NCBI GenBank assembly: GCA_026936335.1
Contig: JAPMXV010000049.1
Location: forward strand, 248,001 to 312,000
Origin: Mantamonas sphyraenae STR306
Taxonomy: Eukaryota; Protista; CRuMs
Reading direction: 5' to 3'
Length of the DNA: 64,000 nucleotides
Shown piece by piece: positions 14,190 through 61,017 of this stretch. A program made the translations under genes and the position numbers. The first letter of the stretch is position 1. Each line of letters opens with the position of its first letter. A model generated the notes under the pieces. It saw nothing but the letters and a program-made list of their open reading frames with translations, was not told the origin of the DNA and did no database searches.

Positions 14190-17100
14190 TCATCGGTTGC
14201 CTCTGCTCACTCTTCCTCCCCGATTCTTGGTCTTGCTGCTGCTGCTGCGGCTGCTCATGCCACTCATGTCGCTCGAGCTTCCTTCGTCCCCTTCCTCCAA
14301 CTCCGGCACCCAGCCCAACGGAACACCCACACGCCGCTCCGCGCGCTCGCTATCGTCGTAGGCGTGTCCAGTAGACTCTCGTTCGCCCGTCAGCTCAAAG
14401 TTGCGTGTGCAGATGGGGCAGTCGTCTGGCACGTGATGCAACGGGTTGCTGCTGCGCTCCTCTTCCAACTCCCGCAGCAGCTCCTTGCCTTGCAACGCTC
14501 CGCGCGACACTTGCTCCTGCAGACCGTGTGCGTATCCGCTCAATTGTGCATAGGCGTTCCTCAGCGACTGCAACTTCTCCTGCGCAGCCTCACGCTGTTC
14601 CAGAGCCCGTTCGAGCTGTGCCGCCAGCTCCACCATGTCCCGCTCCATCCCGCGTTTCTGTTCCAGCTCGCGTTGGCACACCTCCAACTGCACTCGCATC
14701 TCCTGTGCTGCGTCCACTTTCTCCTGCAGCTCACGCACACGTGCTTCTGCACGCTCCACGTCTCGCTGCAGTCGTGCCTCGGCCTCGCCTCCCCCTGCGC
14801 TCACGCCTACGTTGCCACTGCTTCCTCCGCGCATGCGCATCTGCTTTTCCAGGTTGCCCACTTGCTCTTCCAAAACCTGTCGTCGTACCTTTTCCTCCTG
14901 TGCGCTCTTGCTAGCTTCTTTGCGGTCTCTCTCGCTGGATTCCAACCTCCTCTTGGCTTCTCTCAGCTGCTCCTCCGCCTTGGCTCCCATCTCTGCCTTG
15001 GCCACCAGTTGCGCATGTTCCGCTTCCAGTTGCTTGCTCTGCGCTTCCCGTGCCGCACTCTCGCGTCCAAGTTCACGCAGCTGCTCTCGCATTTCCTGGT
15101 TCTCTGCTGTGACCTTGTCTAGCGCAGCCTTGATCTGCTTGCTCTCTCCTTCTCCAATCTGAACCTGCATCTTGCTCTCAGACAAGCTTCGCTCCAGCTC
15201 CATCTCATGCTGTCGCTGCTTCTCCCGCTCCTCCCGCTCGCGCTCCAGCTTCGCCTCTGTCTTGGCCTGTTGCTCTTCTGCAGCTGCCTTTGCCTTACGC
15301 TCACGCTCCAACGCCGCTTCCAGATCCAGCGCCTTTCCTGCCATGGCGTTGTGTTCGCTCGCCGCAGCGCGTTTCTCGCGATGCAGTTCCTCCACTTCGT
15401 CGCGAAGCTCTTGCATCAATGCTTCCTGACTCTTCAGCAGCTCCTTGTTCTGCTTTAGCACAGCCACGTCCACTTGCAAGCTCTGCAACGCCTTGCTCGC
15501 CTCCTTGTGCTCCTCTCGTACCGCACGTTCGCTCGCCTCTGCTGCTGCCAATCGTGTCTCCAGCTCCGCCTTGCTCTTTTCCAGTTGTGCAACCTCTCGG
15601 CTGGCTCGCTCCACTGCACGCTCTGCTTTGCCTGCTCGCTCGCTCCACATGCGCTCTTGCTCCTGTGCCTTTTCCACCGCACGCTCCTTCGCCTCCCGCT
15701 CCCGCTCCGCCTCCCTCTCCGCGCTCACTGCTCGCTTTTCCGCCGCGGCCACCGCTGCCGAGTCCTTTGTCAAGCTGCGTCGCTCTTCTTCTTCCTTGGA
15801 CATCTTTGCCTCTATGCGTGCCAGAGCGCTTTCTGCCGCAACGGCGCGGCTCTGCGCCTGGCTCACATCGATCTCCAGCTCCTTCACACGTGTCTCCAGC
15901 TTCGACTTTGTCTTGCGTGTCTTGTTGTACGCCTCCTGCACACGTTGCTTCTCGTCCTCCACCCTGCGCTTCTCCTCGCGCACCTGTCGCATTTGCTCCA
16001 GACTCTCTGCCCACTTACTTTCCAGCTCCTGGGTGCGGCTCTCCTTCTGCGTGGCCTTCTCTTTCGCTTCCTTTGCGCTGGTCTCGGCCAGTCCTGCGCG
16101 CTGCTCCGCTGCATTCTTGTCCAGCTCCACACGCTGCAGTGCTTTCTCCAGCTCGCGTATCTGTCCTTCCAGCTGCTTCTTTTCCTGTCGCACTTCGTTG
16201 TACGCCTGCTGGCTTCTCTCCAACTCACGTCTCACACGCTCCAACTCGCCCGATTGTTCCACGCTCCTCTCTCGCTCTTCCACCAGCCGCATGCTCGATT
16301 GCTGCGACTGCTCCCGTGCACTGCGCTCCAGCTCCAGCTGGTGCTCCATCTGCGCCCTTTCGCTCTCCACCTGCTGCATGCGTTCTTCGGCGCGTTGAAG
16401 GTTGCTCATGGCTGCCTCCAGTCGCTGTGCTGCTCGCTGGCTCTCCAGTTCCGCTTCGTGTACCCGTTCCTCCATCTTTTCCAGTTTGCTCTCTGCACGC
16501 TCCGTACCACGCTTCGCCTCCCGTTCGCTTTCCTGACTCGCGCGCATCTGTGCTTGCAGACGCGCCACCTCCAGCTCAAGCGCCCCCTTTTCCTGCTTCA
16601 GTGCGTCGCACGCATCGCGCGCCGCCTGCAGCTCGCCGCGCAGCACCTGCGCCTCCTTGGCTGCTGTGTCTGCTTCCTTCTGCACACGTCGCACCTCATT
16701 TTCCAGCTGCTGCACGCGCAGTTCGTGCTCGTTCCGCATGCGTTCCACACGTGCCTCATTGCTTGTCTGCGCACGTGTCTCGTTTTCTCTCAGGTCGGCT
16801 CGCAGCTCCTCCACGGTCTTGCGAAGACCCACCACCTCTTCTGCACTTCGCTCCGCACGCCCATTCGCCTCCCGCGCGCTCATCTGTGCCTCACTCACCT
16901 CCTTTTGCGCACGCAGTGCCCACTCTGCGCTGTCGTCCTTCCTTTCCAGCGCCAGCTGTGCATTCTGCTTTTCCAGGTCGGCGATGCGCTGCCGCTCCAG
17001 CTCCACAGCTGCTCCGAGTTCGTCCGCTCGCTGTTCCGCTGCGCGCAGCTCTTTCGCCTTCGCCTCACCCTTTACTTGCTCCACGTCCAGCGCCCGCTGC

Positions 17101-20100
17101 AGACGGGCAACCTCTGCCGCAAGGGTTTCTCGTTCCCGTTCCACCTTTTGCCATCCGCTTCGCTCCTTCTGTTTCTCCTCGGCCGTCTGCTCGCGCCGCT
17201 TCAGCTCTTGCCTTGCCTCGTTCACCTCCTCCCTGCTCAGCTCAAGCTCCTTGCGCACACGTCCCAGCTCCTGGCTCAGCTCGCTGCGCTTATCTTCCGT
17301 GCTGCGTTGCTCTACCACCAGCCCGGCCAGCTTCTTCTCCAGCTCCATTTGCACCTCCTGCTGCGTTTGTACTCTCTTTGCAGCGCTGGATGCCTCCTGG
17401 CGCGCCTCTTCCATCGCCAACTCCATTGCACGTTGCTGTTCGCGAGCAAGCTGAACCGCTTGCGTCTGTTCCGTGTACCGTCGCTTCTGCTCCGACACCG
17501 CCTGTTCCAGAGCTGCCACGCGTCCCTCTGCTTCCTTATTCTTGCGCTTCAGAGCCTTGGCCAGCTCCGTGGCCTTGTGCAGCTTGCGTGCCTGGTCGTC
17601 GCGCATGCGTTGCACTCGGCTCAGCTCCTCCACAGCTGCCGCTTCGCTCTTTTCGCGTGCGCTCATTTGCTTGGCGTTCTCCTCCATCTGCCGGCTCATG
17701 CTGCGCGTATGTGCCTCGGCCTTTTCCAGTGCACGCTGCACACCCTGCAGCTCCTCCTGCAATTCCTCCACATGTTTGGCCAGCACGGACAGTTCCGCTT
17801 CGCGTCCGCTCACCTGCATCCTCAACTCCTCCACTCGTTTCTCCTGCGCTTCCGCCATGCTGCTGACACGTTCCTGTGTCGCACGCAGCTCCTGACGCAA
17901 CTCGCTTCTCTCTTCGCTCACGCTCGCCAGCCGCTCCGTCGTCGCCTCCAGTTTCTCGCTCGTCGCACGCAGGCTTGCACGCAGGCCATCCACCTCGTCC
18001 TCCTTTGCACTCTGCATCGTTTCCACACGCACAAGGTTCGTGCTCGTTTCGTTCAGCGCCGTCTCTGCAGACGACGCACGCGCAGCCTCTGCTTGCGCTT
18101 GCGTCTCCAGCCGCTCCAGCTTGGCTTCCAACGCCTCTTTGTCCATCGCCAGTCGCTCCGCGCGCTCCTTGCTCTCTGCAAGCTGCGCGTTCAAACGCAC
18201 GCGTTGTTCCTGGTGAGAAACAATCTGTTCTTCGCGTGCCCTGGCCGCATCTTCCAGTTGCTCCACACGCTGCGACATCCGGCCCAGCTCCTCCTTTGCC
18301 TCGCGCGTCGCCTGCTTCCATTCGTTCAGACTCTCTTCAAGCGCCTGCACGCGTCGCTTCTCCTCGTGTACACTCTCCCTACTCGACGCACCGCGCTGCT
18401 CCTCCACCTCCAGCGCATCCTGCTTGGCCTGCAGCGCCGCCTTGGTCTCTTCCACCGCCCCTCGCAGTGTGTTGATCTCCAGTTGCACCTTGAGCTCGCG
18501 TTCCGCACGCGCCTCCTTCATCGACTGCACCTCGGCCTGCAGCCGTTCCACCTCGCCCTCCTTCTTCTCCAGAGCCGCCGCCAGCACGTCGCGAGAATCT
18601 CGCAGCGTGCGAACGTCCGTCGCGTGCTGCTTGTTCGCCTCAAACAGCCGGTTGTACTCCTTCTCCACACTCGCCTTTGCCGCCTCGTGTTCACTCTTCA
18701 TCTTCAGCAGCTGCTCCTGGAACCTCTGTCTGCTCGTTTCCGCCGCACGGAAGTGTTGCATCTGACGCTCATTCACAAGGGCCTCCGCCTTTGCTCGCGA
18801 TTCCTTTGCGTTGCGGTGTGCTGCTCGCAGCGCCTCCACCTCGTCTTTCAGGCTCTTTGCAGTCTCGGCCGTCTGTTCCTCACGCGCCCGCACAATCTGC
18901 ACTTCTGTTTCCAGCTCTCCCCGAGCTTCGCGGCACACGTTCAAGTCGCGCTTGCTCGTCTCCAGTTCCCGTTGCAGCTGGCTCGCCTCTGCTTCGCTCG
19001 CCTCGCGTTTCTCCTGCTCCCGTTCGCATCGTTGCTTCCATTCGCGCACGTCCATCCTCAGTTGAGAAATATTTTCTTCTTGTTGCCTCACGTTCTCCTG
19101 CGCGTGGCCCAGGTCTGTTTCTGCGTTTTGACGCAACTGACGCAACTCCACCAGCGCCGCACGCTGCTTCCCGTTCTCTTCCTCCAGCGCCGCCACCTGC
19201 TTTTGCGCCTCCTCCAAACGCACACGCGCTTCCTTCAGGCCGCTTTCCATCTCCTTGCGTCCGCGCTTGCTGCGTGCCACCTCGCTGCGCATCCGGTCGG
19301 CTTCGCGCACATGCTCCGCACGCGCACTCGCCAGCTCCTTCTCCAGCGAACCCACCTTCTCCTGTGCGCTTTGCAGACTCGCTTGTGTGCGCTCGGCCCC
19401 TTCGCGGCTAGCTTGAAGCTGTGTCTGCGCCGTGGACAGCGCTGTGCTCAGATCTCCTTTGCTTGCGCTCAGCGCAGACAACTGCTCGCGTGCCTCTTGC
19501 AGCCTTGCGTCCAGCTTTTCCGCACGTTTCTCCACCTTGGCCAGCTGCTCCTCTTGGTTCTTGCGAAGCGCCATGTCCTCCTCACGGCCCTTGCGCAGCA
19601 TGGACGCCTCTTGCTCCGCCGCCCGTTTGCTCGCAACCAGTTGCTCCTGCGCCTCACGCATTTGTGCAAGTGCCTCCTGCAGCTGCATGCGCGTTGCACT
19701 CTCGTTCGCCACATCTGCTTGCAGCTCACTCACGCTGCTGTTCAGCTCCTCCTCGCGTGCTGCACGTTCTTCCTTGGCCTCGCGCAGCAGCGCCTGAAGC
19801 GTTTGCACTTGTTCCTGCATCTGCTCTCGTTTGCTCTGCTCGATGTCTGCTCGCCGTTCGCAAACCTCCGCCTTGCTGCGCAGCTCTTCAATCTGCTTCA
19901 CCGCCTGCTCCCGCTGTTCGACAGTTCCATCCAGCTGACTCGACAATAGGCGCGACTCTTCCTGGAAAGACATTTGCAGCTCGCTCGCACGGGCCTCTGC
20001 CTCATCCTTGCGCGTGCGCGCGTCCTCCAGCAGCTCCTCCAGTCTCGTCACCTTGTTGCGCAGCTGCTCCATTGCAAAGCGCATGTCAGACTGTTGTTCC

Positions 20101-23100
20101 TGTGCCTCGCTCAGCTGGTTCAACACCTCGCGCTTCTCCTTGGCCAGATCGTCCTTCTCTTGCGACCTCTGCTCCAGGTGGCTGGCCAGTGTTTCCATTT
20201 GCTTTCGCTGTGACTCTACCTGCGAACGCAAACTCACGTCTTCCAGCTCGATGCGCCTGTTCTCCTCCTGGCAAAGCCTATGTGCTTCCCTCATGCGACT
20301 CAGCTCCTCGAAAAGCCCACTTGCACGCGTTGCCTCCACCCTGCCCTCGTTCTCCAACACGGCCAGTCGCAAACTTTGCTCTCGCTGACGGCTGTCCAGC
20401 TCACGCACACGCGCCTGCTCTGCACCCAGCGCCTGTTCGCTCTTTTCCAGTGCAGCCACGACCTCTTCGCGCTTTGTCACAGCCGCCTCCAATCGCATCT
20501 CCAGCGCTCGTATCTCGCCGCGGAGCGTGTTTTGAACGGCCTGCTGCTCTTGCGACACGTTTGCCTCCTTGCCACGCTCCTTCTCTAGCGCCTTTTGCAG
20601 TCCCTGCACTTCGCGCTTCGACTCGGCGAGTGCCTGCTCCGCCGCTCGCTGTGCCTTGTGCACACCGTCCAGCTCTCGTTCCAGCGTGCGCACACTCTCG
20701 CGTGCACGATCTCGCTCGCGCGTCGCCTCTTCCAACTCTCCTTCCACTGTTTGCACGCGCAGCTGAGCTACGCGCACCTGTTCGCGCAGCTCTTCACTTG
20801 TGTGCTCATTCGTGCGCAGCTGTTCCTCCAGCCCGCGCCTCGCACGCCGGCCCTTTTCGTATCGCTCACTCACACGCTCCAACTCCTTTTCCACCTTGGC
20901 AAGCTCTTCGCGCGCCCGCTCTTCGCTCATGCCACGTTTCGACAGGGCCAAACGCGCGTCTGCAAGCTGCTCGCGCAGCTGCTCGTTCTCCGCACCCTGC
21001 CTCTCTGCCACGCCCCTGCTCTGCTCAACCTCCTGCTGCAGCGCCTCGATGCGCGGTAGATGTCGGTTTGACACTTCGCTGCGCAGCGTCTCGTGCTTGT
21101 TCACAAGCTCCGTGTGCTGCTGCACGAGCTCCTCATGCTTCGCCACAAGCCGCTCCTCTCTTGCGCGTCCCTCTCCCAGACTCTGTTCGGCATGGCCCAT
21201 CTTGACGGCCAGCACGCGATGCGACGATCGCTCCTCTTCCAGACGCACGCGCGCCGCTTCGGCCTTGCCCTCAGCCTCTGCAGCCTCGTCCTTGGCTGCC
21301 TCTGCCTCGCTGCGTGATTCGGCAAGCGCACGTCGCAATTCGCTCGTTTCGCGCGCACGTGCACTCTGCTCGTCCGCCAGTTGCTGCTCCAACGACCTAC
21401 GCCCATCCCGCTCTGCATCAAGCAGCTCACGTACCTCCCGCAGCTCCGTTTCTTGTTTGCTCGCCGTCTCTTTGCTCAGTGCGTACATCTGCTGCACAGA
21501 TTCCACACGGAACACTTGTTCCTGGACTGCTGCACGCAGCTCCTGCACCGTTGAACGCTGTGCCTCCTCTTGTCGCCTCATCGCGTCCGCCTCCCGCCGC
21601 GCTTCTTCGTACCGGCTCTCCAGGCTTTCCACTTGGGCGCCCAGATCCTGTTGTGAACGGTTCAGCGCACCCACAGTACTTGTGGCCTCACGCAGTCCAC
21701 TTTCCAGCGCTTCTGCATGCGATTGTTCGTTTGTGCGCAGTTCCTTGAGCGTTTCCAACTCGCGTGCAGTCTGGTCGTACGTCGCTTGCAGCTCGTTCAA
21801 CTTGCGCGTGCTGCTTCGCAGCCTGTTTTTCAGCTCACTGCCCACCTCTTGCTGCTCCTTCAGCACTTGCTCCACCTGCGCCGTCAAGCGTTCTTTTTGC
21901 TCGACAAGCCGCTCGTTCTCTTTGCTCAACGACTGCATCTCGTACGCCATTCCCTGCACCTTTTTCTCCGATGCCGTCAGTTGCTGTCGCACTCGGTCCA
22001 ACTCGCTCTCAGTCGCAGCCATTTCTCCGCGCATACGCTGCACGTCGCTACTCTGCTCGTTTAGCCTCTGCTGCAACCCCTTGCGCCGCTCTTCTTCCAT
22101 TTCCAGCGTCGATTGCACGTGCACCACTTGCAGCTCCGCCTTGCTCAGCTGGTCTTGCGCGCGCGAGTGCTCCTCTCGCACGCTACGCAGCTCGTCGGCC
22201 AGCTGCAGACGTGATGCTCGTTCTTCTGCAAGCTTGGCCTCTGTTTGCACACGCACAAACTCGGCCTTTTCTCGCTCGCCCATCGCCTGCATGTTTTGCG
22301 TCGTCACCTTCCCGATCTGCTTCTTCACCTCTTCCACTTCGCGCTCATACCTCCCCTCCACCGCCTCCAGTTCACCCTGCAGCTGCCGCACACGCGCATT
22401 GTGTGCCTCTTCCTTGCGCAGGGCAGCCTCTTCCACGCTGCTCATCTGGCTCTGTACTCGTGCAAGCTTGACCTGCGTGTCACTCAGCGTCGCCGACTGT
22501 GTACGCAGTTGCTCCTCCGCCATCGCCTTGGCCTCCCGCAACTGCCCCACTTCTCGCTCCAATGCCTCGCTCGCGTCCCGCCGTCCCTGCACTTCCATCT
22601 GCAGCGTGCTCACTTGCGCCTCACTCTCTTTGCGAGCTCGCTTGTACTTGTTCACCTGTTCCTGCAGTCGCGCACGCGCTGCCTCCACCTGACTCATCCC
22701 AGCCACGGTGCGCTCCAGCTCACGCACTTGTGTGCGCAAGCGCTCATTCTCAGCTCCCACTCGCTCCGCACGCACGCTTGCCTTGCTTTCCAGCTCACCC
22801 TGCCGCTCCGCTCGCTCCCGCAGATCCTTGCACGCGTTGCGTTCAGCATCCAGCTCCTTTTCTACCTGCTCACATCTCTTTTCGAGCGACTCGACCTGCT
22901 CAACCAGCCGTGCTTGGGTCACTTCACGCACTCGCATCTCCTCTCCCAGCGACTGCTTCTCTTCACCCAACAAACGCATTTCACCGCGTAGCTTCTCTCG
23001 TGCGGCGCTGGATGCGGCCAGCTCTTCACGCACGCCACTTAGCTGCGCGCTCAGCCTTTCGTTTTCCGCGTTCAGGCGCTCGTTTGCTCCACGTGACTCG

Positions 23101-26100
23101 GCGTAACTTCGTTCCAGATCCGCCTTGACTGCCAGCAACTGCTTCTCTCGCCCCTTCACCTCCGCCATCTCCACCTGCACCTCGCGCGCAAAGTCGGCCT
23201 TGCTCTCCAGTTGAGCCCGCAAACTGTCCACCGTGTCGCTCAACGCCCGCTTTTCTGTGCGCAGTTCGCCCACGCTGCTCTCGGCCACGCTCAAGCGCAG
23301 CTCCAACGCTTTGCGTTCACGCTCCGCATTAGTGCCTGCACCACGTTGGGTTTCTTCGCGTTGCGACGCCTCGTGCAGCGCCGTCCGTGCGCTCGCCAAC
23401 TCCATGTTCACCCCCTTCAGCTCGTGCTCCATCGTGCTACGCGCCTGTACCGCTTCATGCAGCTCGGTGCGTGCTTTTGCCAACTCGTCGTGCATCTTCC
23501 TTAGCCTCTCTTCCGTCTCCACGCGCATGCGTCGCTCTTGTACCAGCTGCTCCGCGTTGGCACTTGCCTCTTCATGCGCGCTGCCCATCGCCCCTCGGCT
23601 CTCGTCCAGCTGCGAGCGCATCATGTCAATTTCCGCGGCACGTCTGCTCACTTGTGTCTCCAGATCTTGCGTCAGGTCCTGTTCTGCCATGTAGTCACGC
23701 GTCACGCTGCGCAGCTCCGCGTTCGCTTCCGACAGCTGTTGCTCTGCCACACGCAACTGCTGCGTCGTTTCTTCCAGCGCGTGTGTCTTGTCCATCAGCT
23801 CGCTGTCTCGGGCCTGTCCTTCTGTCTCGGCCTCGCGCATGGCATCCTGCAGAGCGCTCGCGTCTGCCTTGACACTCTCCAAGCTCTCGCGCAGCTCTTG
23901 CAAACGCGCCTCACTGCTCAGCTGCACTTCTTGCAGTCGCGCAGAGGTACTCTTCAGCTCTGTTTGGCTCGCAAACAAAGCCTTGTCCATCTCTGCGTGC
24001 TTGTTGCGCAGCTCCTCGTTCGCCTCGCTCAGCTCTCGCACACGGCGCTTCAGATCCTCCGCGGTCGACTTCTCCTCTTCGTACGCGCTACTGCTGCGCG
24101 ACAGGCGCTCCAGCGCATCATCCAGCTCGCTGCTCAGCCTGTCTCGCTCCACCGCGTGCAAAGACACACTCTCCTTGTGCTCCTGTCGCAACGCATTCAG
24201 CGCCTTGTCACTGCTCGCTGCAGCATTGCGTGCACGCTCTGCCTCAACCTCTCGCTCCTCTGCATACTCGCGCAGTTCTGCAAGTCGAGACTCCCAACCC
24301 GTGCGCTCCTCCTCCCGCTCTGCTTGCAGCGCCTGCATCTGCGACGTCGCTTGCTTTGCCGTCCGCTTGGTCACCTTTTTCAGCTTGGTCACTTCTTCTT
24401 CAAGCGCCTTGCGCTCCGACCCCATCTCTTTCAAACCTTCTTGCATCACAGTCATCTCCGCTGCCAGCGCCTCCCGCCTTCCCAGCGCCTCCTTGTACGC
24501 ACGCGACAGTTTGCTCTTTTCGTGTTCCAGCTGCCGCTTGGAATCCACTTCTCGCCCTTGCTCCTCACGTAGACGCTGCGTAAGCTCCTTCAGCTCGTCC
24601 CTGGCCTCTCGCAGATGGTTGCACTCACTCTCCAGTCGTGCCTTTTCCACCTGCATCGCAGCGTGCGCCTCCTGCTGCGCGGCCATCTTGTCGTAAAGGT
24701 CTTGCATCGACTTTTCCATCGTCTTCTTTTCTTCTTGCAAACGGCTCAACTGCACCTGAAGCTGCTGTGTCTCGCTGCGTGTCCTCTTGCCAGCCGCACG
24801 TTCCTCTTCCACCCGCTGCGACAACCGCCCAATCTCCTTTTCCAACGATGCCTTTGCCTTTTCCTGCTGTGTCACCGCGGCCTGTGCCTCGCCCAGCTCG
24901 TTTCTCCAACTCCCGCACGCGTCCCATCTGATCGGCAAGTTCGGTCTCCCGGGCCTTGCTCTTCTCGTCCAGCTGGCGATGCATCTCCTCCAGTGACTGG
25001 TATCCCTCCATGGCACTGTCCAGCTGGGCCATCAGCTGGTGTCTCTGCTGCGCTTCGGCCTCCATGTGCATCTGCATGTTCACCAGCTCCATCTCTGCCT
25101 CCTGCTTCTCCGCGTGGATCGCTCGGAACCTTTCCGCCGCGCGTCGCAGGCTCGCTGCAAGCTCTTCTCGCTGCGTACGCAACGTCTCCAGCTCGCCTGC
25201 TCCTTGTTCCTTCGCCACCACCAGCTCCTGCAGCGATTCGTTCAGCGCTGCCGAGCTCTCCTCTAGTGCACGTTTTGACGACACCTCCTGCTCGTACTTG
25301 CGTTGCATCGCTGCAACCAACTCGTCGTGTTCGACCTGTTGTGCCTCAAACTTGGCGTCGTATGCCGTGCTAAGCGCAGCCAGATCCTCACCCAGTTTCG
25401 TTGCCTTTTCTTCTGCCACCCGTTTCTGGTGGGTTGCCACTTCAAGGTCATGCTCCAGCGCCTGTCGCTGCTGCACCATGACCTGAAGTTGTGCCTGCAG
25501 ATGCGCCTGGTTGCTATGGCCCACCTGGCGCTCGTGTTCCAGCTGCACCTGCAACGTTTGTCGCGCATTCTCTGCCTCTTGCCTTGCTCACGCAGCTCGT
25601 CACGCTCCCGCATCCACTGCTGACGCTCTCCCTCCATACTCTTCACTGCGGCGTCGTGCTTCTCTTGCAATGCTTCCAATCGCAACGACAGCTCCAGGGA
25701 CTGCTGCTCGCCCGCCTGCACCTTTTCCGTCAGGGTGCGGTGCTCGCGCGTGTTCTTCTCTCGCGCATCCACCATCGCCTTGCTGATCTCCTGCATCTGT
25801 GCCTCCACTCGCTTCTTTTGCTCCTCCATTCCCACGATCCGGTCTTCCAGCCTCTTGCGGTCGCCCTCGCCCACCTCCAGCAGGTACTTCTTCTCCGCCA
25901 CCTCGCTTTCCAGCCTCCCAATTGTCTCCTGTTTCGACGCCACTTCGCGCCGGCTCTCGTTCAAGGCCTTCTCTTGCTGCCCCAAGTGCTCTCGCAGCTG
26001 ATCCTGCTGCACTTGTGCCTCCACCTGCACCTCGTCCAGCTTGCGGCTCAGCTCCTTCATGCTTTGCCTCTTCTTGCGCAGCTTCTCTGCAATGGCGTTC

Positions 26101-38100: not shown

Positions 38101-41100
38101 TACGCGTGCTCTGGCCTGCGTCTTGATCTGCTCTTTGGCCAGTTCCAGTTTCTGCACCTGAGCTTGCGCCTCGCTCAGATCCTTGGTGAGCCGTTCCACC
38201 TTGGTCTCCAGCTCCATCCGCTCCGTCTCCGCCTTTTCCGCTTCGTCCGCCTTGGCCCTGTACAGCTGCTGTGCACTTTCCACATTGGCGGTCAAACGCA
38301 CTCGCTCTGCCTCCTGCGCCTCACGTGCCTTTCCAACCTCTTCCTTCAGAATGGTGATGTCGTGTGATTGTTGTGTGTTCCGTTCCTCCAGCAAATCCAG
38401 GCGTCGCTTCATGTCCTCGTTTTCCATGCGCGTCGTTTTGGCCAACACGCGCTGGTCGTTCGCCTCTTGTTTCAGTTCTTCATACTCCTTTGCCGACACA
38501 GGGATTGCGTCCTTCGGTACAAGGTGACTCGAGCTTGCGCCCACCATCCCTCCATATGGCACGCTAGCCGCATGCCGCGACGTATCCAACCCGCTGCTCT
38601 CCACACCCGCAAACGATGGTTCAAACAACGTGCTGCTGGTGTTCGCTGCACCGTAGTCACCGACTTCGCCACCACGACCCGCACCCAGCTCGTCAAACGC
38701 AAGTACGCGCCCCTCCATGTTCATCTTTGCACGCTCTAGGGCCACGCTCAGCTCTCGGTTGTTGTTCAGCTGCACCTCGTACGACTCCTTGATCGAATGG
38801 TAATCGACGCGCAGAGCGTTCAGTTCGATTTCGTTCGACTCCAGCGCGCTGCGACAACGACTCGCCTCTGCCAACGCGTTGCGCTGGGACTCGAGGTTTC
38901 CCTGCGCCACACTCTTCCAATAGTTCACGTCATCTTGCAGCGCCGCTTGGAGCTTGCTCAGCTCTGCCACCCTTTGCGATTCCATCGTCTGAAGCGCCAT
39001 GCGCTTGCGCGACTCCTTGTCTGCGCTCTCCTTGGCTCCAGTCAGCTTGGTGATCTCTTTCTGCAATTCGTCCACCATTTCCCGAAGCATCCTGCCCTTC
39101 TCCTCTCCGCTTTTCTCCAGGCGCGCCACCTCACTTTCCAGCAGATCTCGTTCTTCCTCTAGCGCATTCTTGCTCAGCTTTAGCTCTTCGTTCACCTGTG
39201 CTTGCATGCGCATCACGCCGTGCAGCTTCTCCAGCTCGGCCTCTGCGCGCTGCATCCGCTCGCGATGCCGCTCCAGTCCATCGCGTGCCGTTTCGCACTC
39301 TGTCCTCCACTCCTGCGCCTGTACTTGTGCCTTTTGCAGCTCAAGGGCGCTGCGCGTGTGTTCCTTGTCCGCTGCGCGCTTCAAGGAATCCACTTCCTCA
39401 CGCAGCTCACCCACCACGCTGTGGTCTGCCTCTCGCGATGCCTCGAGGCTTGACACGCGTGTTTCTGCATGTGCCAGCTTCCCCAGTGCCTCCTGAAGAG
39501 CCTGTTCCGTCTCGCGACCCTTTGTGCGCAGCGCGTGCTCCGTCTGCTTCAGTGTGCGCACCTCTCCACTCAGCTCCCTCTCCATGCTGGAGAACAGAGT
39601 GTGCATCTCGTCTCGCTCGCTCTCCAGTAGAGCGTTGCTGCGGTGTGCCTTGTCCACCTCCAGCTGCAGCTGGTTCACCTGTTGTTCGTACCTGGCCATT
39701 TGTTCCCTGTGCTTCGTTGCAAGCGCCTCGTGCTTTGTCTGCAGCGAGTCCAGGCGCTCCAGCGTGCTTGTCAGCTTCCGTGTCACACCTTCCATAGCCT
39801 GGCGCACGTCTACTGCCTCTTGTTCCTTCTGGTCGGCCACGGACCGCGCCTCGGACAGCTCTTTCTCCATCTCCCGCGATGCACTCTCTGCCTTTTGCCA
39901 CCCATCGTGGTAGTGTGCCTGTTCTTCCAACTGGTTCTCCATCGACATGCACTTGTTTTGTGCCTCTTGCAATGCAATGCCCGTCCTCTGCAGCTTCTCC
40001 TCCAGCGCACTGCGCTTCTCCCTCATCTCGTGCAACTCTTCGTTCGCCGACGCCTCACGCTCCTTTGCCCTCGCCGCTGCCTCATCTGCGTCTCCGCACG
40101 CATGCTCCAGCTCCATGACCTTGGTTCGCAATTCCTCAGCTCTTCCACCTGTTTCTGTGCCACCATCTCCTGTCGCAACATCGACTCAAGCTGGGCACCC
40201 CCTCGGCCGCCTTGGCTCTTGCCACTTCCACCCGCACCGGCGCTCTGTTCACGTGCATCTGCCAGCTCGTCTCTCAGTCGCGCAATCTCGCGAGCCATCC
40301 CTGCTTCGTGTTCCTTCACGTCTGCAGCAACGCGTGCTGCTTCCATGTCCCTCTGTCGCAACTCTTCGCGTGCCTTTTGCTTCTCTGTGCTGATGGCCAG
40401 TTTGGCCTCGCGCACTTGGTCTTGTGCGGCCGCAACCGCTTTGTCGGCTTCCACCTTGTGCTGTCGGTTCTGCTCCTGTTCTGCTTCCAACTTGGCTTGC
40501 AACTGTGTGATCTGTGCCTGTACACGCTGGATGTTCGCCGCCAAGCTCTCCTCGCGCCTGTGTCCGGCTTCCACCTCGGCCTCGGCCTTGCGTACACGCT
40601 CGTTCGCTGCACGAGCCGTCCTTTCGGCTTCCTGTTTTGCCAGCGTGGCCTGCTCTTGTACTCCCTGCATCTGCATAGCCAGACGTGCCAGTTCTTCCTT
40701 GGCGCTTGCTGTCGCGCGTGCACGTTCCTTCATCTCGCCACGGGCGGATTCTAGAGCCAGCTCCTTCTCCCGCACGTTCTGCTCTGCACGCGCGGCTCTC
40801 TCTTGAATCGCACGTTGCTCGGCCCGAAGACTTTCCAGGCTGCGCTGCCACGTTTTCACCTCGTCTGCTGCGCGCTGTTCCTTTTCTCCATAACGACGCC
40901 TCCACTCTTCGGCCTCCTGTCTAGCTCCATCGGCATCTTCGTTCAGGCTGCTCTCGGCTGCGCGCAGACTCTCTCGCACCTTTTCGACCTCCTCTCGCAT
41001 GCTCTGCGCCTCCATCTGGCTTCGGTGCTGTGCAGCCTCGCTCGCTTGCACGCGCTCAACCAACGCCTTCACCTCCTTTGCGTGCGCCTCCACGCTGTTC

Positions 41101-44100
41101 TCCGAAGCACGTTGCAACTCCTCCACCCGCTGCCTCAGCTTGCCAATTGTTTCTCTCTCCCGGCTTGCCTTCATCTCAAGGGCCTCGAGCTCCAGACGCG
41201 TGTGCTCCGCCTCTCGCTGTGCTTGGTTCCTCTCCGATTCCATCTGCGCAGCCTTGTCTTTCGCTTCGTTCAGTTGCTGGCGCTGTGCTTGCCACTCGTG
41301 CTCCTGTGCGTTGCGTCGTTCCGTGTCCTGGTGTGTTTCCGTGTCCAGTGCCTTTTCCAGCGCCTGTACGTGGTCCTGTGTAGTCTTCATCGCTCCCTCC
41401 AGGCGGCGGACTGCGTTCTCGCTCTCGAACCGTTCGCGCTTCAGCTTCTCGTTCTCCGCTTCCAGCTTGTCATTCTTTGTTTCCAATGCTTCAATTGCCA
41501 GTTCCTTTTCCAGCACCAGAGGCGCATTGCCTTCCACCATTTCTTGCAGATTGGCACGCTCCCGTTCCAGCTGTTCCACACGCTCTGTCAACGTCGCCAC
41601 ATCCTCCAGTGCCACCGCCAGGCGTGCATCTCGTTCCGCCACACTGCTCTCCGCCATGTGCACCGTCGTCTCGAGGCCGTTCTGATGCAATTCCGCCTCG
41701 GCAAGCTGCCGTTGCACTTTGTCCAGTTCAACCTGCGACTCAAGTGCCTCCTGTGCAGCTGCCTGTGCAGACTGCTCCATCAAGTGGCGAAGTCGTGCTA
41801 TCTCCTCGGTCATGCTTGTGATGCGCCCGTGGTTCGCCTCTTCTGCACGCCACAGCGCGTCACGTGTCGTTGCCGTGTCGAAAAGAGCCTCTTCCATCTC
41901 TCCGTACGCCTGTTTCATCCCTTCCAGCTCCTCCTCCAGTCGCGCTGCCTGATCTTCCGCCCACACCTTCCCCTGCTGCGCGACCTGCAACTCAGACTCG
42001 ATGCGTGTTTCCAACTGCTCCAGTTGCTCTCGAAGCTGTGCGTTCTCTGCGCTCAACTCTTCGGTGGTCGATTCATGCGCCAACCCACGTTCCAGCTGTG
42101 CTTTTGCTTCTGCACGCAGCTTCTCCACTTCCTCCCGCCGCTCCTGCTGCAGCTGCGCAAGCTGCGCCTGTGCACGCCCCAGCTTCTCGTGTGCCGTGTT
42201 GGCTTCCTCCATCGCTTTGCTGTGACGAACCTCCAGCGCGTGCGACTCGCGCCTCCATGTCGTCTGGCCCTCGACAAGTTGGGTTTGCGCCGCGTCCAGT
42301 TCCGCAGCAACTTCCTCTTGACGCTTCACTGCCTTGCGCAGCGCTTCACGCAAGTCTTGGTTCTCCCGATGCAGTTGCTCGCTCACAGCCGTTGCCTGCT
42401 TCGCCTCCAGCCGCAAACCCTCCACCTCGCTCGACAGCTTCGCACGGGTCCCTTCCAATTCCCGCGTAATGGACATAAGCGTCTCGTTCGCGTTGCTGTG
42501 TTGGTGCGTCACTTCGCTCAGCGCAGACTCCAGTTGTCCTGCCCGAGTCTGCGACTCATTGGCATGCGCCTCCAGCGCATGAGCAAGTTCGTTCGCTTGC
42601 GCGTGGCTCCCTGCGTGACGGCGCTGCCACAGCTTGGTCTCTTGTTCCAGAGCATGTACCGCCTGTGCCAGTTCGCCGATGCTCCTCTCCTGCCTGCTGC
42701 ACACCTTGTGCAGTTCTTTGCACTCTGTCTCTTTGCTGTTTGCCTTGCTCGTTGCTCGCTCCAGGTCGTCTTCTAGCTCGCTGATCCGTGCCTGCAGCGT
42801 CGTTTCCATCATTTCTTTTGAGGCACGTTCGTTGTCACACATGCTTCGTGCATCTTCCACTTGACTCGTCGCCGTCGCCAGCTCTTCGGCTTGTTCCCGT
42901 GCACGGCTCACAACACGCTCCAGCTGCAGCTTCTGCACATTCACCTGGTACTCTAGTTGCTCCTCGCGCTGCTTCCACTCGATGCTCTTCATCTCAAGCT
43001 CGTTACGCACCCCACGCAGCCGCTCCTCTGCAGCGCTACGCTGCGCGCGCTCGTCACGTGCCACTCGCCGTGCTTCACGCACTTGGTTTTCCAGCTCCAC
43101 CATTTGTGCATCCACCTGCGCCATACGCAGACTCAGCCCGTGGTTCTCGCGCCTCATCTCCTCCAATGCCTCCTCAAGGTGGGCATCTTCCGCACCGTCA
43201 TCGTCGCCGTCGCCTGTCCTCTGTCCAACCACCTCTTCCTCCTCCCCAGAGGCTTCTTCTTGTCCCCCCCTGCTGCGCATCGTATCCAGTGCCTCTTCCT
43301 GTGCTTCGCATCGGCTCGTCAGCATCTGTGTTTCCAGTGACAGCTGCATGTTCTCCTCCTCCACCGCACGCAGCCGCTCCTTTGCCTTTTCGCCCTCGTT
43401 TTCTGCCGATTCCAACCGTGCTGCCAGTCCGCTCGATCGTTCTCGCCCACGTACAAGCTCGCCCTCCAACTCACGCACCCTTTCCGTCGCGTTTCCGGCC
43501 ACGCTGCGCAGATGTGCCACCTCGCTTCGCAGTGCCTTCACCTCGCTCTCTGCGCGCTCTTGGGCCTCCATTGCGCGTGCAAGATCACCTTGGCTTTCGC
43601 GCAGGTCCAACTCCCGCGACTGAAGTCGTTCTTCCACAGACCTCAAGCTGCGCGACCGTTCCTCCAGCTTCTCCTCCAGGCTATCTACCACGCTTTGCCT
43701 CTCTTTCACACGCTCCTGTCGCTCCATGCCTCGCTCGACTGCCGCCGCTTTGTCTCGCTCAGTTGCCTCTACCTCCCGCTCCAGCCGCTCCTGCAACTCC
43801 TCCAACTCATCCACTCTCGCTCCCAGCCGCTTGCACTCCTCGTTTGCCTCCTTGCTTGCAGCTTGCAGTCGTGTCACCTCTTCGCTAAGCTTCTTCGTCT
43901 CGCGCTTGCCCTCGGCCTCGCGCTGCTGCACCTCTTGCAACAAGGCCATTGTGCGTTCGTTGCGTTGCTTCAATGCACTCTCTTCCCGTGCACGGTTCTC
44001 TTCGCTCGCCTGAAGTTTCGTCTCCAGCAATCGCTTCTCGTCATGTGCTTTCCACAGCGCCTCGTTCGCCTCGTCCACCTTGCGCTGCAAGGCCTGCACC

Positions 44101-47100
44101 TGTCGCTGCCGCTCGTCACTGCTGGCCTTGCTCGCTCGCAACTCTCCCTGCACACGCTCCAGCTCCACACTCAGTCTGTTCACGTCCGCCACTCGCCTTT
44201 CGGTCTCTGCACGCAAGCGTTTCTCTGTCTCGTCCAGCTGCAGCTCCACCTGCACACGCGACGAGTGAAGCTCGTCCTTCACCTCCGCAATGCTGCTTAG
44301 GTCCAGTTTCGACACTTCCAGCGCACTCTGCAGCTTGTCTTTGCTCGACTCCAGCCGCTGCAACTGCGCAACCGTCTCGTTCAACGAGTGCGACAACTGT
44401 GTGCGTGTCCACGTGTGCGACGCCTCCTCGTTTTCGTACTTGCTCTTCCACTGCTCCGCCTCCATCGCCAGCGCTTGCTTGCTTTGCATCGCCTCCGCCA
44501 GCTCTGCGCTCTCACGTGCTCGTTCACGCTTCTCCGCTTCCGCCTCCTCCTCCACTTCAACAAGCCGCTTCTTCACCCTCCGTTGCTCCTTGCTCAGCTT
44601 CGCCACCTCCGCTTCCAGCGTTTCTTCGTTCTTTGCGCGTACTGCCGATTCGTGCTCCAAGCGTCCTCGCAGCTCCTCTGCCTCCTCACGCAACTGCGCT
44701 GCCTCGAGGCGCACCTCGCTCAACTGCTCCTCCAGCACGCTTGTCTGGCTCTGCAGGGTCGTCACCTGCTGTGCAGCACGCACTCGTGCGCTCACTTCCT
44801 TTTCCATCGCTGCACGCCCGATCGCAAGCTCCTGCCTCGCCCCTTCCATCTCTTCGCTCTTCACACCCAACTGCGTCTCAAGCTCCGAGTTCACCCCACG
44901 CAGCTCCTCGCACAAAGCCTCCTTTGCCTCCAGCTCACGCGCACACTTTGCACCCTCTTCCTGCACCTGCGCCAATTCCCGTGACAGAGTGTCCACCTGG
45001 ACATGCAACGACGCATTCAGAGAACTCAGTTCCTCCTCCTGCGTCGCCTTGGATGTGCTTGTCTCCTCCAGCCTCGTCTTCATCTCCTCCCACCCGCTCT
45101 TCAGTCTCCTCCTCTCCTCCTTCCACTCCATCTGTTCCTCTCGCAGTTGCTCGCACTCACCGTTACTACGCTCCACCATCCCCTCCAGTTCCGACACGCG
45201 TGCACTGAGCTCGCGAATCTTGTTCCCGCTTGCCTGCTCATTGTTCGCCTTGGCCTCTGTAACTTCGGTCAACGTACGCTCGCTCGTTTCCAACTTGCTC
45301 TTCAGTGCAGCGCACTCGTTTGCAAGTCCGCTTCGCTCCCCGTTGCTCTTTTGCAGGTTTTTGCGCAGCTGTTCACACTCGTTGCGCAGCGCCCCGCGCT
45401 CCGCTTCTGCCTCGTGCAACGCGTTTGTGGTCTGTTCCAGCTCGCTGCGCAACATCCACTGTGTCTGTTCGCTCTGCTGGCTCACTCGTGTGCCTCTTGT
45501 CTGCATCTCGTGCAGTTCAAAAGTCGCACGCCGCACTTCGTCACGTACGCTTGCAACCTCTGCTCCGCTGCTTTCCAGCTGCCTTTCCAGCTCGCTCACA
45601 CGGCCTTGCAGTTCTCCGGCCTGACGCTTCCAGTGATTTCGTTCGTTCTCCACCTCCACCACCTTGGCTTCATACTCCACGTACATCTGCTCCATCTCGC
45701 TCTGAGCACGCTCCACTTCCGCCTGCAGTTCAGCCACGCGTCCCTGCGCCTCCTTCAGCCTTGATCGCGTTTCCACCTCTTGAGCCACACGCATCTCCTC
45801 CTTCTGTCCCGCTTCCAGAAGCTCTCCTTGCAGCCGTTCGCTCGACTGCCTCACGTTCTCCATGTCTGCTCGGTAGTCGCTGGACACTCGCTCGCGTTCC
45901 TTTTCTGCACGCTGCGCCGCATCCTTCCACTTGGCGCACTCGCTTTCCAGCACGCGCACGTCCTTTTCCAGTTCCCCACGCAGCCGCACGCTTTGCTCCA
46001 GCTCAGCTCGTGTCTTGACAGCCTCGCCACGCAGCGTCTCCACCTCGGCCACGGCTTGTTCCAGCTCGCCGTTGCTCTTTGCCAGTCTTGCTGCAAGGTC
46101 AGCCGTGTTGCGGTGTTCCGCTTGCTCTCGCTCTCCCATTTCGCCCTGCAACCGCTCCACCGTCTCTTGTGCATGCTTCAGCTTGCCTTCCTGGGAATCC
46201 AGGTGCGCCACGAGGCCTTCGTGATCGGCTGCCAACCGCACGTGGTTGCTGTTCAGCATTTCCAACTGCTGCGTAGCACTTGCCAGCGCACGTTCCTTGT
46301 TCTCAAGCATGCTCTGCAGCGATCGAATTCCCTGCCGCAAGCTCTTGCTCTCGCCTTGCTCGGAACTCAAACGGCGGTCCAGCTCCTCAACTGCCTTTTC
46401 CGCCTGTCGCCGATGCAAGCTTTCCTGCATCTTGGCTGCCTTGGTTGCGTCCAGCTCGCTGCGAAGTTCGCGCAGCTCTCGCATCAGTCCTGCTCGCTCT
46501 TCTTGGAGCTGACCCACTTGCATCGCATCCGACTCGCCCACAATGCGCGTCTGGTCCATTTCCCCCTGCAACGCCGCAAGGTCCGCCTCCATCGCACGGT
46601 TCATCGTCTCCACCGCCACTCGCTGTTGGTACATCAGCTCCAGTTGCCTGTTTGCTTCGGCCACTTGCTGTTTCTGCGCAGAGATCTCGCTCTGCAGTTT
46701 CTCCCGTTCGCTGTCTCCTTGCTCCGCCGCCTCCGCCGCCTGGCGTTCCGCGCTTCGCTTGCTTTGCTCCATCAGATCTAGACGGTGCTTCCACTGAGCC
46801 ATCTCACCTTTGACCCGCTCCATGTCCTCGGTTTGTCGCCGCATCTCCATCGTCTGCTCGCGCACCTTGCTCTCCGCAGCTTCGCACGTCTTCTTGCTTT
46901 CCTCCAGCTCCTCTTCCGTCTTGCGCAATCGTTCACGCAGACGACCCAGCTCACTTTCCGCCTTGTTTCGCGCCGTAGTGTGCTGTTCCTCTCTCATGCG
47001 CCCCACGCTCTCCTGCTCCTCCAGTTGCCGCGCAAGCTCCACCACATGACCTCGAAGCTCCTCTCGCTCGCGTTTCATCGCCTCGTTCTCCACCTCCAGG

Positions 47101-50100
47101 CTCTCCGCCACCATGCTTGTGTTGGATGCCACCGCCGTGTGCTCTCGTTCGGCCAGTGCCAGGTCGTTGCGCGCCTTATCCCGTGCCAGCGTCACCTCTT
47201 CCACTTTTTTGTCCGCCGCTGCCGCACGCTCTTGCCACTCCTTGACCTCTTGTGCACGTCGTCCGCTCTCACGAGCTGCTGCATCGCGCATTTCCTGCTC
47301 CGCCCGCACCTTTTTGCGCAACTCTTCAGTTTGACGCGTGGTTTCTTCGCGCAGCTCCTGCAGCTCATCCTGTACCCGTGCTCGTGCCTCCTTCATCTCT
47401 CGCACCGTATCGCTCAACCTGCGCTTGTCTCCCTCCAACCTTTCCACCACTTCTTCTCTCTTTCGCGCCTCAAAAGCCACGGCATCTGCCTTGCGCTGTG
47501 CCTCTTGCGCTTCTTCCCTCGCTTCTTTGCACTCGGCCACCTTGCTCGCCACGCGCTTTTGCAGCGCCTCCATAGCCGCCCTTCGCTCCTCTTCCCGCTT
47601 CTCCACCTCACGCAACTGTTTGCGTAGCTCACCCATCTGCTCGTCTGCGCGCTCCTGTGCCTCGGCAGCTCCACGAGTCGTGCGCTTCAGCTCTGCCTCT
47701 GCAAATTCCACTTGCGCCTGCAATTTCAGGGTCATGCTCTGCTCCTCCTGTAGCCGCTTCTGTGCCTGCTCCGCGCGCTCTCGTGCCGCACGTGATTCGT
47801 CCACCGCGCGTTCCCTGTCCTGCTCCATGTGTCGCAGGCGCTGCGCGGTCGCCGCGTCCACATTGCTCATCGTACCCTGTAGCTCCGCCATCCGCGTCTC
47901 TGCCGTTTCCACCGACGATTCCAGCTCCAAAACGCGTCTTTCCAGCTTGCCCTTTGCCTCTGCGCTCTGAGTCAGCGAATTGCGCAGGCTCTCCAGCTCT
48001 GCTTGCAAGCGCATGGCTGTGTCTTCGTGTTGGTCCCGCTCTCCCTTCAGCGAGCTTGCTTGGCTGTGCCACGTCTCCCGTGCCGCTTTCCATTGTGCAC
48101 GCACGCTTTCGGCCTCTGCATGTGCTGCATCTGCGCGTTCCTGTGCCTCGCGCACGCTCTCAGTCAGCCGCGCCGCCTCGTCCAACGCTGCCGCGCGCAA
48201 CTCCTTCATCGCGCGCTCGCCGGCCTGCACTTGCATTTGCCGCTCTTCGACCATCCCTTGTGCAGCCTGTGTCTCTTCGTGCATCGTTGCCACGCGCTCC
48301 TCCCACTCGTGTCTCTCCTGCGCCCACGCGAGCTCCGCGCTTTGCCAAGCCAGCGCCTCTGCCTCATGTTTGGCCTGTGCCTCTTGCAACACACGTGACA
48401 GCTCCTGCGCTCCGTCCAGCTGCACAGCCAAGCTGTTTGCGCGGTTTTCAGCCTCCAGGCGCTTCTCATGTTCGCTGGCCACCTCTGCTCTCAAAGACGC
48501 AACAGCCTCCTTGCGCGCCTTTGAGCTCGCCTTCAACTTGTCCTGCCACTGTTGTGCCATGTCGCTTTGCGCAGTACGTTGCTTTTCCAGCTGTTGCATC
48601 AGTGCTTCCGTCTGCTTGTGAACAGCTGCCACGTCGCTCTCCAGCGCCGCCCGTTGCTTGCTCCACGCCCGTTCGCTGCCGCTAGACTGCTGCTTCAATG
48701 TGCGAAGCTCCGTGGTGACGTCTTCCAGTACCTCTGTGCGCTCCTCCAGCGTACTGGTCACCTGGGCGACCTTTGCGCGAGCCTCGCTCAACTCGTGCTC
48801 CAGTGTCGAGACGCGTTCACGCAGTGCCTTGCCCTTCTCGGCATCCTGCGCCGCCTCTTGCTGGGCCTGTGCCAGTTGCTGCTGAATGCTTCCATTCAGC
48901 TTCTTGGCTTGCTCCAGATCCATGTCGGCGCTGGCCTTTGCAGACGACACACGTTCCAGCTCTTCCAGAGTCTGTTCCAGCTGCATGCACACGTCTGCAT
49001 ACGCGCTTGCGCTTTCGCGTGCACGCACACGCTCTTCCTCTGCCTTCTTGGCCGCCTCTGCTGCCTTGGCACCCATGCGAGCGTATGCTGCGCTCAGTTC
49101 GTCCTGCCTCGTGCTTACCTCCTGCAGGCTCAGTGCAAGCTGGCGGTTGTCTCTGCGCAATTCCTCCACCAGCTTTGCGTCTCTGTGTGCACGTACAGGT
49201 GGCGTACTCTTGGACCGGGCCTCATTCGCTGCCTGACGCTGCTCCTCCGCTACCCTCCGCGCCGACTCCAATTCCTGCTCCAGCTGCGCCTTCTCCACGC
49301 TCAAGGTCGCCAGGTTGGACTCTGCCGCCCGCGTTTCACCTCTTGCTTCGTTGATTTGCTCCTGTGGGCATGCCGTCGCATCGTCAGCGCAGCCGACAGG
49401 CACACACACCGAGGACGGGTGGAGGCGCGAGTCGCGTCGTGTCAGTGGCCCCTCGGCTCCGGCAAGCGCGTACCCCTTCCCTCGTCCACGCACACACTTT
49501 CTCTTCTGTCTGCACACATCCCTTCATACACACATACATACACAGCCCCTACACACCCCGTCACCATGCATCCAAATCCCCCGCCCCCTCGTTTCGCGTC
49601 TTGCTTAGGATAAAACTCACCTCGAGCGCAGCAACTTGAGACGCGTGTTGTCGCTGGCTTTCGCGCAGCTCCCTGCGCGCAGCATCCAGCGAATCTTGAA
49701 GTTGTTTGGCTGTCTTGCGCTGGCTCTCCATGGCTTCTTTGCTATCGCGCACCTGCTTCTCTAGGGTCTTCACCTGGCCGCGCAGCTGCTTGGCTTCGAA
49801 TGCGGCACGAGATTGTTCTCCCGCCAGCTTTTCGTTTTCCCGCCGCACAAGCTCAAGCTCCTGCACACTCTCGCGCGCAGCTCGCTCCTTCTCGTACAAG
49901 GCCCGCTCCGTGTTTGCCTCTGCAGCCTTGACCCTTTGCGTCCATTCGTGTTCCTTGGCTTGGAACCGCAGTTCGTTCTCGTGCTTGTCAGCTTGCGCAC
50001 GCTCCAGCTCCGCTCGGCACGTCTCCAACCGGCTTTCTGCCGTTCGCTGTGCAGACTCTGCTTGTTGCAGTGCAAACACAAGGCTCGTCGAGCTTGCTCC

Positions 50101-50421
50101 ACTGCTGTTTCCTCCTTCCCCGCCTCGTGCGGGGCTTCCTGCAAACAGCCCTCGTCTCGGGCTGTCCACACCATATGTTGTACTTGTGCTTGTGCTTCCG
50201 GGCAGCGTCAGATCCAGCGGTGTGTGCACCGCATACCCTGCCCCACGTGCTCCTTCCCTGCTGCTGTTGTTGTTGATGTAGTCCATCGAAAGCAGGTCGT
50301 CTCCCAGTTCGACGGGCGCAATCCCGCCTGCGCCTCCCAATGTGTTTTCTAGCTCGTCAAAAACATACGAGTCGTTCAGAGTGGTTGCAAACGCCCCTGA
50401 CACTGACGAGTCACGCTCCAT
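14190..50421 (-). CDS. Giant coiled-coil protein 'gene A', ~11,990 aa after correcting five single-base frame breaks; exons 50421-49621 and 49361-14190
   Basis: ORFs 49561..50421, 40023..49517, 36283..40131, 34166..36316, 25263..34310, 24625..25554 and 14190..25016 tile with overlaps. The E/Q/R/A/L-rich helical sequence swaps frame abruptly at ~40140, ~36335, ~34345, ~25580 (each -1) and ~24902 (+1). No promoter gaps or splice signals at those joins. Confidence 0.75.
49362..49620 (-). other. Spliceosomal intron of gene A (259 nt, phase 0)
   Basis: GAG|GTGAGT donor, TG-rich body, GCTGAC branch-like site and CCACAG|GAG acceptor. Joins ...SQVAALE to EQINEARG... in frame. Confidence 0.85.
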
Positions 50422-50488
50422 GACTACTGGAAAGTGCTTTTTTTTTGTTGGCGTGTGTTTCCTTGCCTACGCAGACGCCCAAAACGTC

Positions 50489-53905: not shown

Positions 53906-54049
53906 CGCCAACGCGTTTGGCCCCGCGGCCGCACATGCCCCATGCAGCCGAAACTCGTCCAGGTGCAACACCGACAGCAGTTGGAAATGACTGCAGACAG
54001 CCAAACATGTGAGGTGGGTGTCCTTGACAGGGCCCCGGCCAACACAACA

Positions 54050-60979: not shown

Positions 60980-61017
60980 CAAAGAAACACCCAACCACAC
61001 CCAACAACCCCTCCTTT

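Follow-up and report, generated by a model that had tools for sequence, protein, structure and literature searches.

A gene of Mantamonas sphyraenae that very probably encodes a non-repetitive coiled-coil protein of about 12,000 residues

Known long coiled coils and the gene under study

Rootletin (CROCC), pericentrin, the CEP proteins and NuMA are long two-stranded coiled coils of 2-3.5 thousand residues that form fibres or scaffolds at basal bodies. For giantin (GOLGB1), a golgin, the coil was named as the longest identified in a review of 2016 (PMC5082667). In this study, we analyzed a stretch of 64,000 nucleotides (nt) from the protist Mantamonas sphyraenae STR306 (contig JAPMXV010000049.1, positions 248,001-312,000 of the forward strand), which is referred to below as the window and to which all coordinates without a contig name refer. 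The minus strand of 14190-50421 is very probably a single two-exon protein-coding gene, here called gene A, into which seven apparent genes merge. In kind, its predicted product belongs with the long two-stranded coiled-coil structural proteins such as golgins and rootlet and centrosome proteins, but it failed every family test run.

Like giantin and other golgins, gene A has a heptad coil of great length that is largely free of repeats and only briefly interrupted, and it lacks an enzymatic domain; its coil is about 3.7 times longer than that of giantin. In contrast to the golgins, gene A has no C-terminal membrane anchor (its last 100 residues form a polar, basic and Ser-rich tail in which any hydrophobic stretch is absent), contains neither GRIP nor any other golgin Pfam domain, and has no sequence similarity to them. 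With regard to the centrosome and rootlet coils, the basal body would be a plausible site for a protein of this kind in a flagellate, but gene A had no Rootletin or PACT match and no homology to these proteins, and CENP-F_leu_zip reached 17.0 bits against a cut-off of 34.5. Unlike myosin II, kinesin and SMC proteins, gene A has no motor or ABC-ATPase head in any of its pieces according to Pfam, and unlike the spectrin/plakin giants (nesprin, dystonin), it shows no repeats in Pfam, in DNA tandem or in internal blastp searches. Most giant proteins are built of repeats, whereas gene A is not.

Relatives of gene A were searched for at several levels, and for every search and fold its pieces were kept unjoined, so that all totals given here are sums over separate pieces. 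The C-terminal 1,200 residues had 0 matches at E<=0.001 when compared by phmmer with 1.84 billion representatives. Word-index protein searches with residues 58-558 of the 3,613-residue piece and with pieces of 1,000 and 800 residues returned no match; these searches failed to return even the organism's own read-derived proteins. There was no paralogue of the 665-residue piece in its own genome, and a sequence search of the PDB gave nothing significant. Look-alikes in the Atlas were rejected: all were generic coiled-coil clusters from vertebrates, and their recognition was too low to be useful. Gene A is thus an orphan within the libraries searched, in which the presence of other Mantamonas transcriptomes is uncertain.

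Gene model, frame breaks and probable transcription

Seven open reading frames (ORFs) lie on the minus strand of 14190-50421. The first four in the direction of transcription are 49564-50466, 40026-49523, 36286-40185 and 34169-36373 (frames 1, 2, 1 and 0), and the remaining three are 25266-34346, 24628-25587 and 14193-25031 (frames 2, 1 and 2). A preliminary description of this locus had joined the seven ORFs into one frame of ~11,990 codons, composed almost wholly of E, Q, K, R, A and L and devoid of recognizable enzymatic or motor domains and of detectable DNA-level tandem repeats, and all of this was borne out. Exon 1 (801 nt) contributes 267 codons and exon 2 (about 35.2 kb) 11,724 codons after five 1-nt corrections, which gives about 11,991 codons and a predicted mass of about 1.36 MDa. 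The corrected frame contains zero in-frame stops over about 36 kb. The pooled composition (E 17.7, A 13.6, R 10.8, L 10.1, Q 8.6, P 0.3 and G 3.5%) is alike in all pieces. In Pfam, all that the pieces matched was coiled-coil noise below threshold, and domains of the motor, enzyme or repeat type were absent; within 14190-50421, Tandem Repeats Finder detected no more than five tiny arrays of 30-52 nt with 2-3.4 copies, and blastp of the pieces against each other found no internal repeats at E<1e-5. The three codon positions are strongly unlike one another (G45/T6 at position 1, A40 at position 2 and G51 at position 3), and this bias, together with the 3.5-residue hydrophobic period described below, showed that the frame is not an accident of the low T content of this strand. 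The parts of the gene are as follows.

49621-50421, minus strand: exon 1, with ATG at 50421 and 267 codons, ending on a codon boundary just before GTGAGT
Within 49621-50421, minus strand: make-up of exon 1, the first ~116 residues non-coil and acidic/low-complexity, the remainder coil
49362-49620, minus strand: predicted intron at join 1, 259 nt, GTGAGT...CCCACAG, phase 0
40136-49361, minus strand: exon 2, piece 2, with 3,075 coil codons
36332-40135, minus strand: exon 2, piece 3, with 1,267 codons and non-coil linkers at about 38494-38712 and 36775-37077
34335-36331, minus strand: exon 2, piece 4, with 665 codons, entirely coil
25588-34334, minus strand: exon 2, piece 5, with about 2,915 codons and a ~170-residue linker at about 32985-33503, predicted disordered
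24906-25569, minus strand: exon 2, piece 6, with about 225 coil codons
14190-24892, minus strand: exon 2, piece 7, with about 3,565 codons, the stop at 14190-14192 and the last ~100 residues (14193-14501) non-coil

The first join is likely a canonical GT-AG phase-0 intron, predicted from the DNA sequence itself, which would link coil to coil. The sequence CTGAC is found about 25 nt ahead of its AG, its T content is 20% compared with 11-14% in the exons, and the frame downstream of it has no ATG for 150 codons. The donor sequence GTGAGT by itself is no evidence for an intron: this strand has 12 copies of it, most of which lie within coding sequence. The 5' end of gene A is uncertain since the stop of an upstream ORF lies just 67 nt from the proposed ATG. 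This upstream ORF (50422-52693, minus strand) encodes HEAT repeats followed by a Ser/Gly-rich tail, and its TGA sits in a donor-like GGTGAG; an A9 run and an acceptor-like TTTCCAG are located between its stop and the ATG of gene A. Fusion of the two ORFs through these donor-like and acceptor-like sequences was rejected, as they give no common frame.

Joins 2 to 6 are single-base frame breaks, each located inside continuous coil. The M. sphyraenae assembly was made with FALCON from PacBio RSII data and polished with Racon and Pilon; its GC content is 59.2% and the organism is diploid (PMC10492846). Only the window's own copy of gene A is present in this assembly, with no second haplotype of the gene. 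Four sequencing runs have been described for M. sphyraenae: one is PacBio, one is poly-A RNA and two are DNA sequenced by Illumina (PMC10492846). We compared the window with contigs from X1-X4, four runs that share both the organism and the study, over 34200-40199, a region that includes three of the five breaks, and all four runs contain this stretch. The comparison gave the following picture for breaks 2 to 4; the positions of breaks 5 and 6 are predicted from the sequence.

40135-40136, minus strand: frame break 2; the window is one base short, and X1 has an extra T (plus strand) that restores the frame
36331-36332, minus strand: frame break 3; the window is one base short, and X1 has an extra T (plus strand)
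34334-34335, minus strand: frame break 4; the window is one base short, and an extra G (plus strand) is present in each of X1, X2 and X3
25570-25587, minus strand: predicted frame break 5; a +1 correction is needed somewhere within
24893-24905, minus strand: predicted frame break 6; a -1 correction is needed (an AAA run is located here), or the window is two bases short

Across these 6 kb, the read contigs differ from the window by exactly three indels, all of them at the three break sites. Each extra base, at 34334, 36331 and 40135, is a +1 change by which the downstream frame joins the upstream one as unbroken coil. There are in addition 21 single-letter differences in the 6 kb (about 0.35%). 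At 35072, 37181, 37243, 38815 and 39883 both alleles are visible across libraries, and the differences are therefore real allelic ones of a diploid. In the inferred frames, 14 of the 21 differences are synonymous compared with 28% expected (p = 0.00025), which implies that the frames flanking each tested break are under purifying selection. It is most likely that the five frame breaks are residual single-base errors in the PacBio-based consensus, because they are five 1-nt indels accompanied by zero nonsense changes in about 36 kb. The interpretation in the preliminary description is thus partly supported: three of the five breaks vanish in read contigs and the first join is explained by a predicted phase-0 intron, while breaks 5 and 6, like that intron, are predicted from the sequence.

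The most serious alternative, which we consider improbable, is that the window haplotype is truly frameshifted, whether through decay of the gene or as a null or pseudogene allele, and that only the other allele, if any, is full. The diploid state and the 21 differences, some of them with both alleles seen, are in its favor, as is the fact that X4, the sole run identical to the window, leaves the break sites uncovered. The X2 contig stops 6 nt past the 36331 site and is uninformative for frame break 3; such a contig end could also mark a bubble. On the other hand, five independent 1-nt indels without nonsense resemble the error pattern of PacBio and are unlike the decay of a pseudogene, the extra base at 34334 is found in all three libraries that cover it (3/3), and the allelic differences bear the mark of purifying selection. 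Even if the alternative were correct, the three tested sites still have an intact allele. As a separate observation, a high-depth contig (44-70x) in X2 and X3, the two probable Illumina DNA runs, ends at 36236-36337, and the next 4 kb are represented only by short contigs with depth <=10; filtered records can produce depth dips of this type.

The nature of the four runs bears on whether gene A is transcribed. X2 and X3 include contigs of 169-278 kb, and they are therefore DNA libraries that include bacteria. X4 consists of tiny low-depth contigs that match the window exactly, like raw PacBio data. The longest record of X1 is 20 kb; this run is present in every one of the 30 bins and spans each of the three tested breaks, and its contigs cover 34200-40199 gap-free and run on past both ends. 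By elimination, we infer that X1 is the RNA run. If so, gene A is transcribed across the three tested breaks with the base that restores the frame.

Slightly less probable than a frameshifted haplotype is the presence of several transcription units, in which internal starts give rise to shorter mRNAs or proteins, or exon 1 is part of a different gene, and no chain of 12,000 residues is made. A full-length transcript was not seen: the longest contig of the published M. sphyraenae transcriptome, whose locus is not assigned, is 32.28 kb (PMC10492846), which is shorter than the mRNA of ~36 kb expected for gene A. The uncertain 5' end, the gap of 67 nt to the upstream ORF and the predicted status of the intron are also consistent with separate units. 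Against them, the corrected frame is stop-free throughout, contigs of the probable RNA run are gap-free over the compared region and continue on both sides, and all pieces have a uniform composition and heptad signal.

Coiled coil, predicted dimer and the CxxC motif

Hydrophobic residues of gene A recur with a period of 3.5 residues in all five large pieces (z = 13-39 compared with shuffles), and this period is clearly favored over 3.6-3.67. Segmentation of the coil was carried out with a home-made heuristic register tracker, which is not a calibrated predictor. By this heuristic, 11,257 of 11,975 residues (about 94%) are in coil-like segments in heptad register, in agreement with the coiled-coil character that had been described for the locus. 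The coil is divided into about 104 register segments with a median of ~80 residues and a longest one of 483. There are about 90 register shifts, among which the stutter type is commonest, and about 11 non-coil stretches interrupt the coil. Non-coil parts include the N-terminal ~116 residues, two linkers of ~70-100 residues, one linker of ~170 residues and the C-terminal ~100 residues. For the largest internal linker, a single-sequence AlphaFold model, which is weak evidence, had a mean predicted local distance difference test (pLDDT) score of 58.9 with no globular domain, and suggested a mostly disordered segment.

At 0.1485 nm per residue the coil sums to 1.67 µm. A rod of up to ~1.7 µm had been proposed in the preliminary description; in view of about 11 linkers and about 90 register shifts, this value is a maximum contour length of a segmented, jointed and non-rigid rod and not a measure of its end-to-end distance.

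Pairing of the chains was examined by complex prediction with two copies of the last 300 residues, each as a single sequence without alignment, with zinc included but unscored. The dimer obtained a score of 0.45 compared with 0.01 for the best control. Among solved structures, the mark of 0.45 was reached by 21/30 homo-pairs and 0/23 single chains from microbes, and by 17/29 homo-pairs and 0/30 single chains from eukaryotes. In the model, contacts run from residue i to residue i with a/d spacing over residues 2-259; the runs agree on at least 88% of contacts, and the pLDDT of the partner is at least 70. The prediction supports the view that gene A chains pair as a parallel in-register dimer.

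It could also be that large parts of the protein are single alpha-helices (ER/K-type) or a disordered polyampholyte, acting as a flexible spacer or entropic spring and not as a paired rod. We assign this explanation a probability as low as that of several transcription units. It would fit the high content of E+R+K+Q (43%), the proportion of strongly hydrophobic residues (only about 20%, below the 2/7 needed for all a/d positions), the heuristic nature of the predictor and the mostly low-confidence AlphaFold model of one linker, built from a single sequence. However, the 3.5-residue period with z of 13-39 is present in every piece and is preferred over 3.6-3.67, Ala (13.6%) is able to fill the leftover core positions, and the in-register dimer model has a/d-spaced contacts over 255 residues with a score (0.45) far above that of the controls (0.01).

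A cysteine motif was found at the chain end of gene A, at the end of the last coil segment, and a second giant coiled-coil gene carrying the same motif is located on the same strand.

14385-14447, minus strand: C-terminal motif ER..NPL.H...D.C..C.R..ELTG (CPIC), just past the predicted dimer interface
2-13395 and on to at least C49:243691, minus strand: gene B, a second giant coiled coil, the next gene but one

A weak copy of this CxxC motif is present inside gene A at 33366-33401, within the ~170-residue linker. Elsewhere in the genome, the motif was found only in gene B, in four cassettes with 34-40% identity over ~57-66 residues. Three of the cassettes are near-identical (7125-7160, 5490-5525 and 4056-4091) and the fourth is outside the window. 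Gene B is like gene A in strand, in being a giant coiled coil and in having the CxxC motif, and no similarity between the two was found by blastp outside the motif. Repeats, which are absent from gene A, abound in gene B: it contains tandem arrays of 33, 99, 132, 231 and 363 nt, with an 11-residue period and His-rich sequence. It also contains a duplication of 231-252 residues at 97-100% identity (about 11050-11800 compared with 9572-10325), and its own frame changes at two places, near 10150-10397 and 3036-3100.

In the Rad50 hook, each of two chains supplies a CxxC motif to a common zinc. The core of the gene A motif, D-CPIC-TRNF, resembles S-CHVC-QRDF of the organism's own Rad50, and this short CxxCxRxF core set in coiled coil is all that they have in common. 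The two differ in that the gene A motif is at the C-terminal end of a predicted parallel dimer and not at the apex of antiparallel arms, and in that the gene A pieces have no ATPase heads in Pfam. Membership in the Rad50 zinc hook family was rejected, as PF04423 had no match to the motif segments of gene A or gene B at E up to 10. In the genome, Rad50_zn_hook (PF04423) matches only C42:134493-134621 (SCHVCQRDF), at 21.7 bits and just below the cut-off, and this locus is the probable Rad50 gene of the organism. For this resemblance, too, the PDB sequence search gave noise only. More speculatively, the motif would bring four cysteines together in the dimer, or would pair with the motif of gene B, and such a site might bind metal and clasp chain ends in the manner of the Rad50 zinc hook.

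Proposed structural role and neighboring genes

Programmed recoding, in which frame breaks present in the genome itself would be overcome by RNA editing or by ribosomal frameshifting, is considered highly improbable: all five breaks are single-base and 4/5 need the same +1, but the extra base at 34334 is present in the DNA libraries X2 and X3, no slippery motif is common to the sites, and the sixth join needs the opposite correction. As a whole, the best explanation of our observations is a single gene of ~11,991 residues whose product is a jointed, in-register dimeric structural rod, and we consider this explanation probable.

Several points weigh against it. With regard to the gene, the read contigs spanned 34200-40199, so that breaks 5 and 6 and the intron are predictions from the sequence; the extra base at 36331 and 40135 was seen in one run (X1); the culture is diploid with real allelic differences in this region, which makes a heterozygous frameshift allele possible; and the stop of the HEAT-repeat ORF is close to the proposed ATG. 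No run is recorded as RNA, and expression depends on the argument by elimination. With regard to the protein, coiled-coil scoring was made with a home-made heuristic, and the fold test, which coiled coils may pass because the model has memorized them, was run without alignment. The Rad50_zn_hook hidden Markov model misses the gene A motif, and zinc was unscored in the dimer model. The structural role is a proposal: the ultrastructure of Mantamonas has not been published, whereas other members of CRuMs have a sub-membrane pellicle (PMC12133344), and the protein therefore has no established structure to which it could be assigned.

In the proposed mechanism, a jointed rod or cable with roughly 100 register segments and about 11 flexible linkers would arise from two parallel chains paired in register. 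M. sphyraenae cells are about 3-5 µm (PMC10492846), and the contour length of the cable could reach ~1.7 µm, a third to half of its cell. We propose a structural role for the protein, as a cytoskeletal fiber, a sub-membrane or flagellar-root-associated cable, or a long tether; it has no catalytic part. A more far-reaching version, which we regard as doubtful, is that the gene A cable is the longest coiled coil yet described and is clasped via CxxC to gene B in a mantamonad-specific fiber system that supports cell shape. If this were true, the gene A cable would join gene B end-to-end or side-by-side, and together they would set or support the shape of the flattened, plastic gliding cell as a cytoskeletal element for which other eukaryotes have no homologue.

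A non-repetitive heptad coil of ~12,000 residues would be several times longer than giantin. Gene A could serve as a test case for the length up to which coiled coils can be synthesized and folded, for single molecules as micrometer rulers or cables, and for the builders of the CRuMs cytoskeleton. In addition, 1-nt indels in the public M. sphyraenae assembly break very long genes, which will then be split or mis-modelled in its annotation and derived proteomes.

Several other features are present around gene A. An ORF on the plus strand (12843-14150) has a borderline Ependymin domain (32.2 bits, cut-off 32.3) and is convergent with gene A; it ends 40 nt from the gene A stop, and the 3' ends of the two therefore overlap or abut. 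On the minus strand, the region 53300-63100 contains many short frames, as expected of intron-rich genes, and an ORF at 61919-63136 encodes a Myb DNA-binding domain (71 bits).

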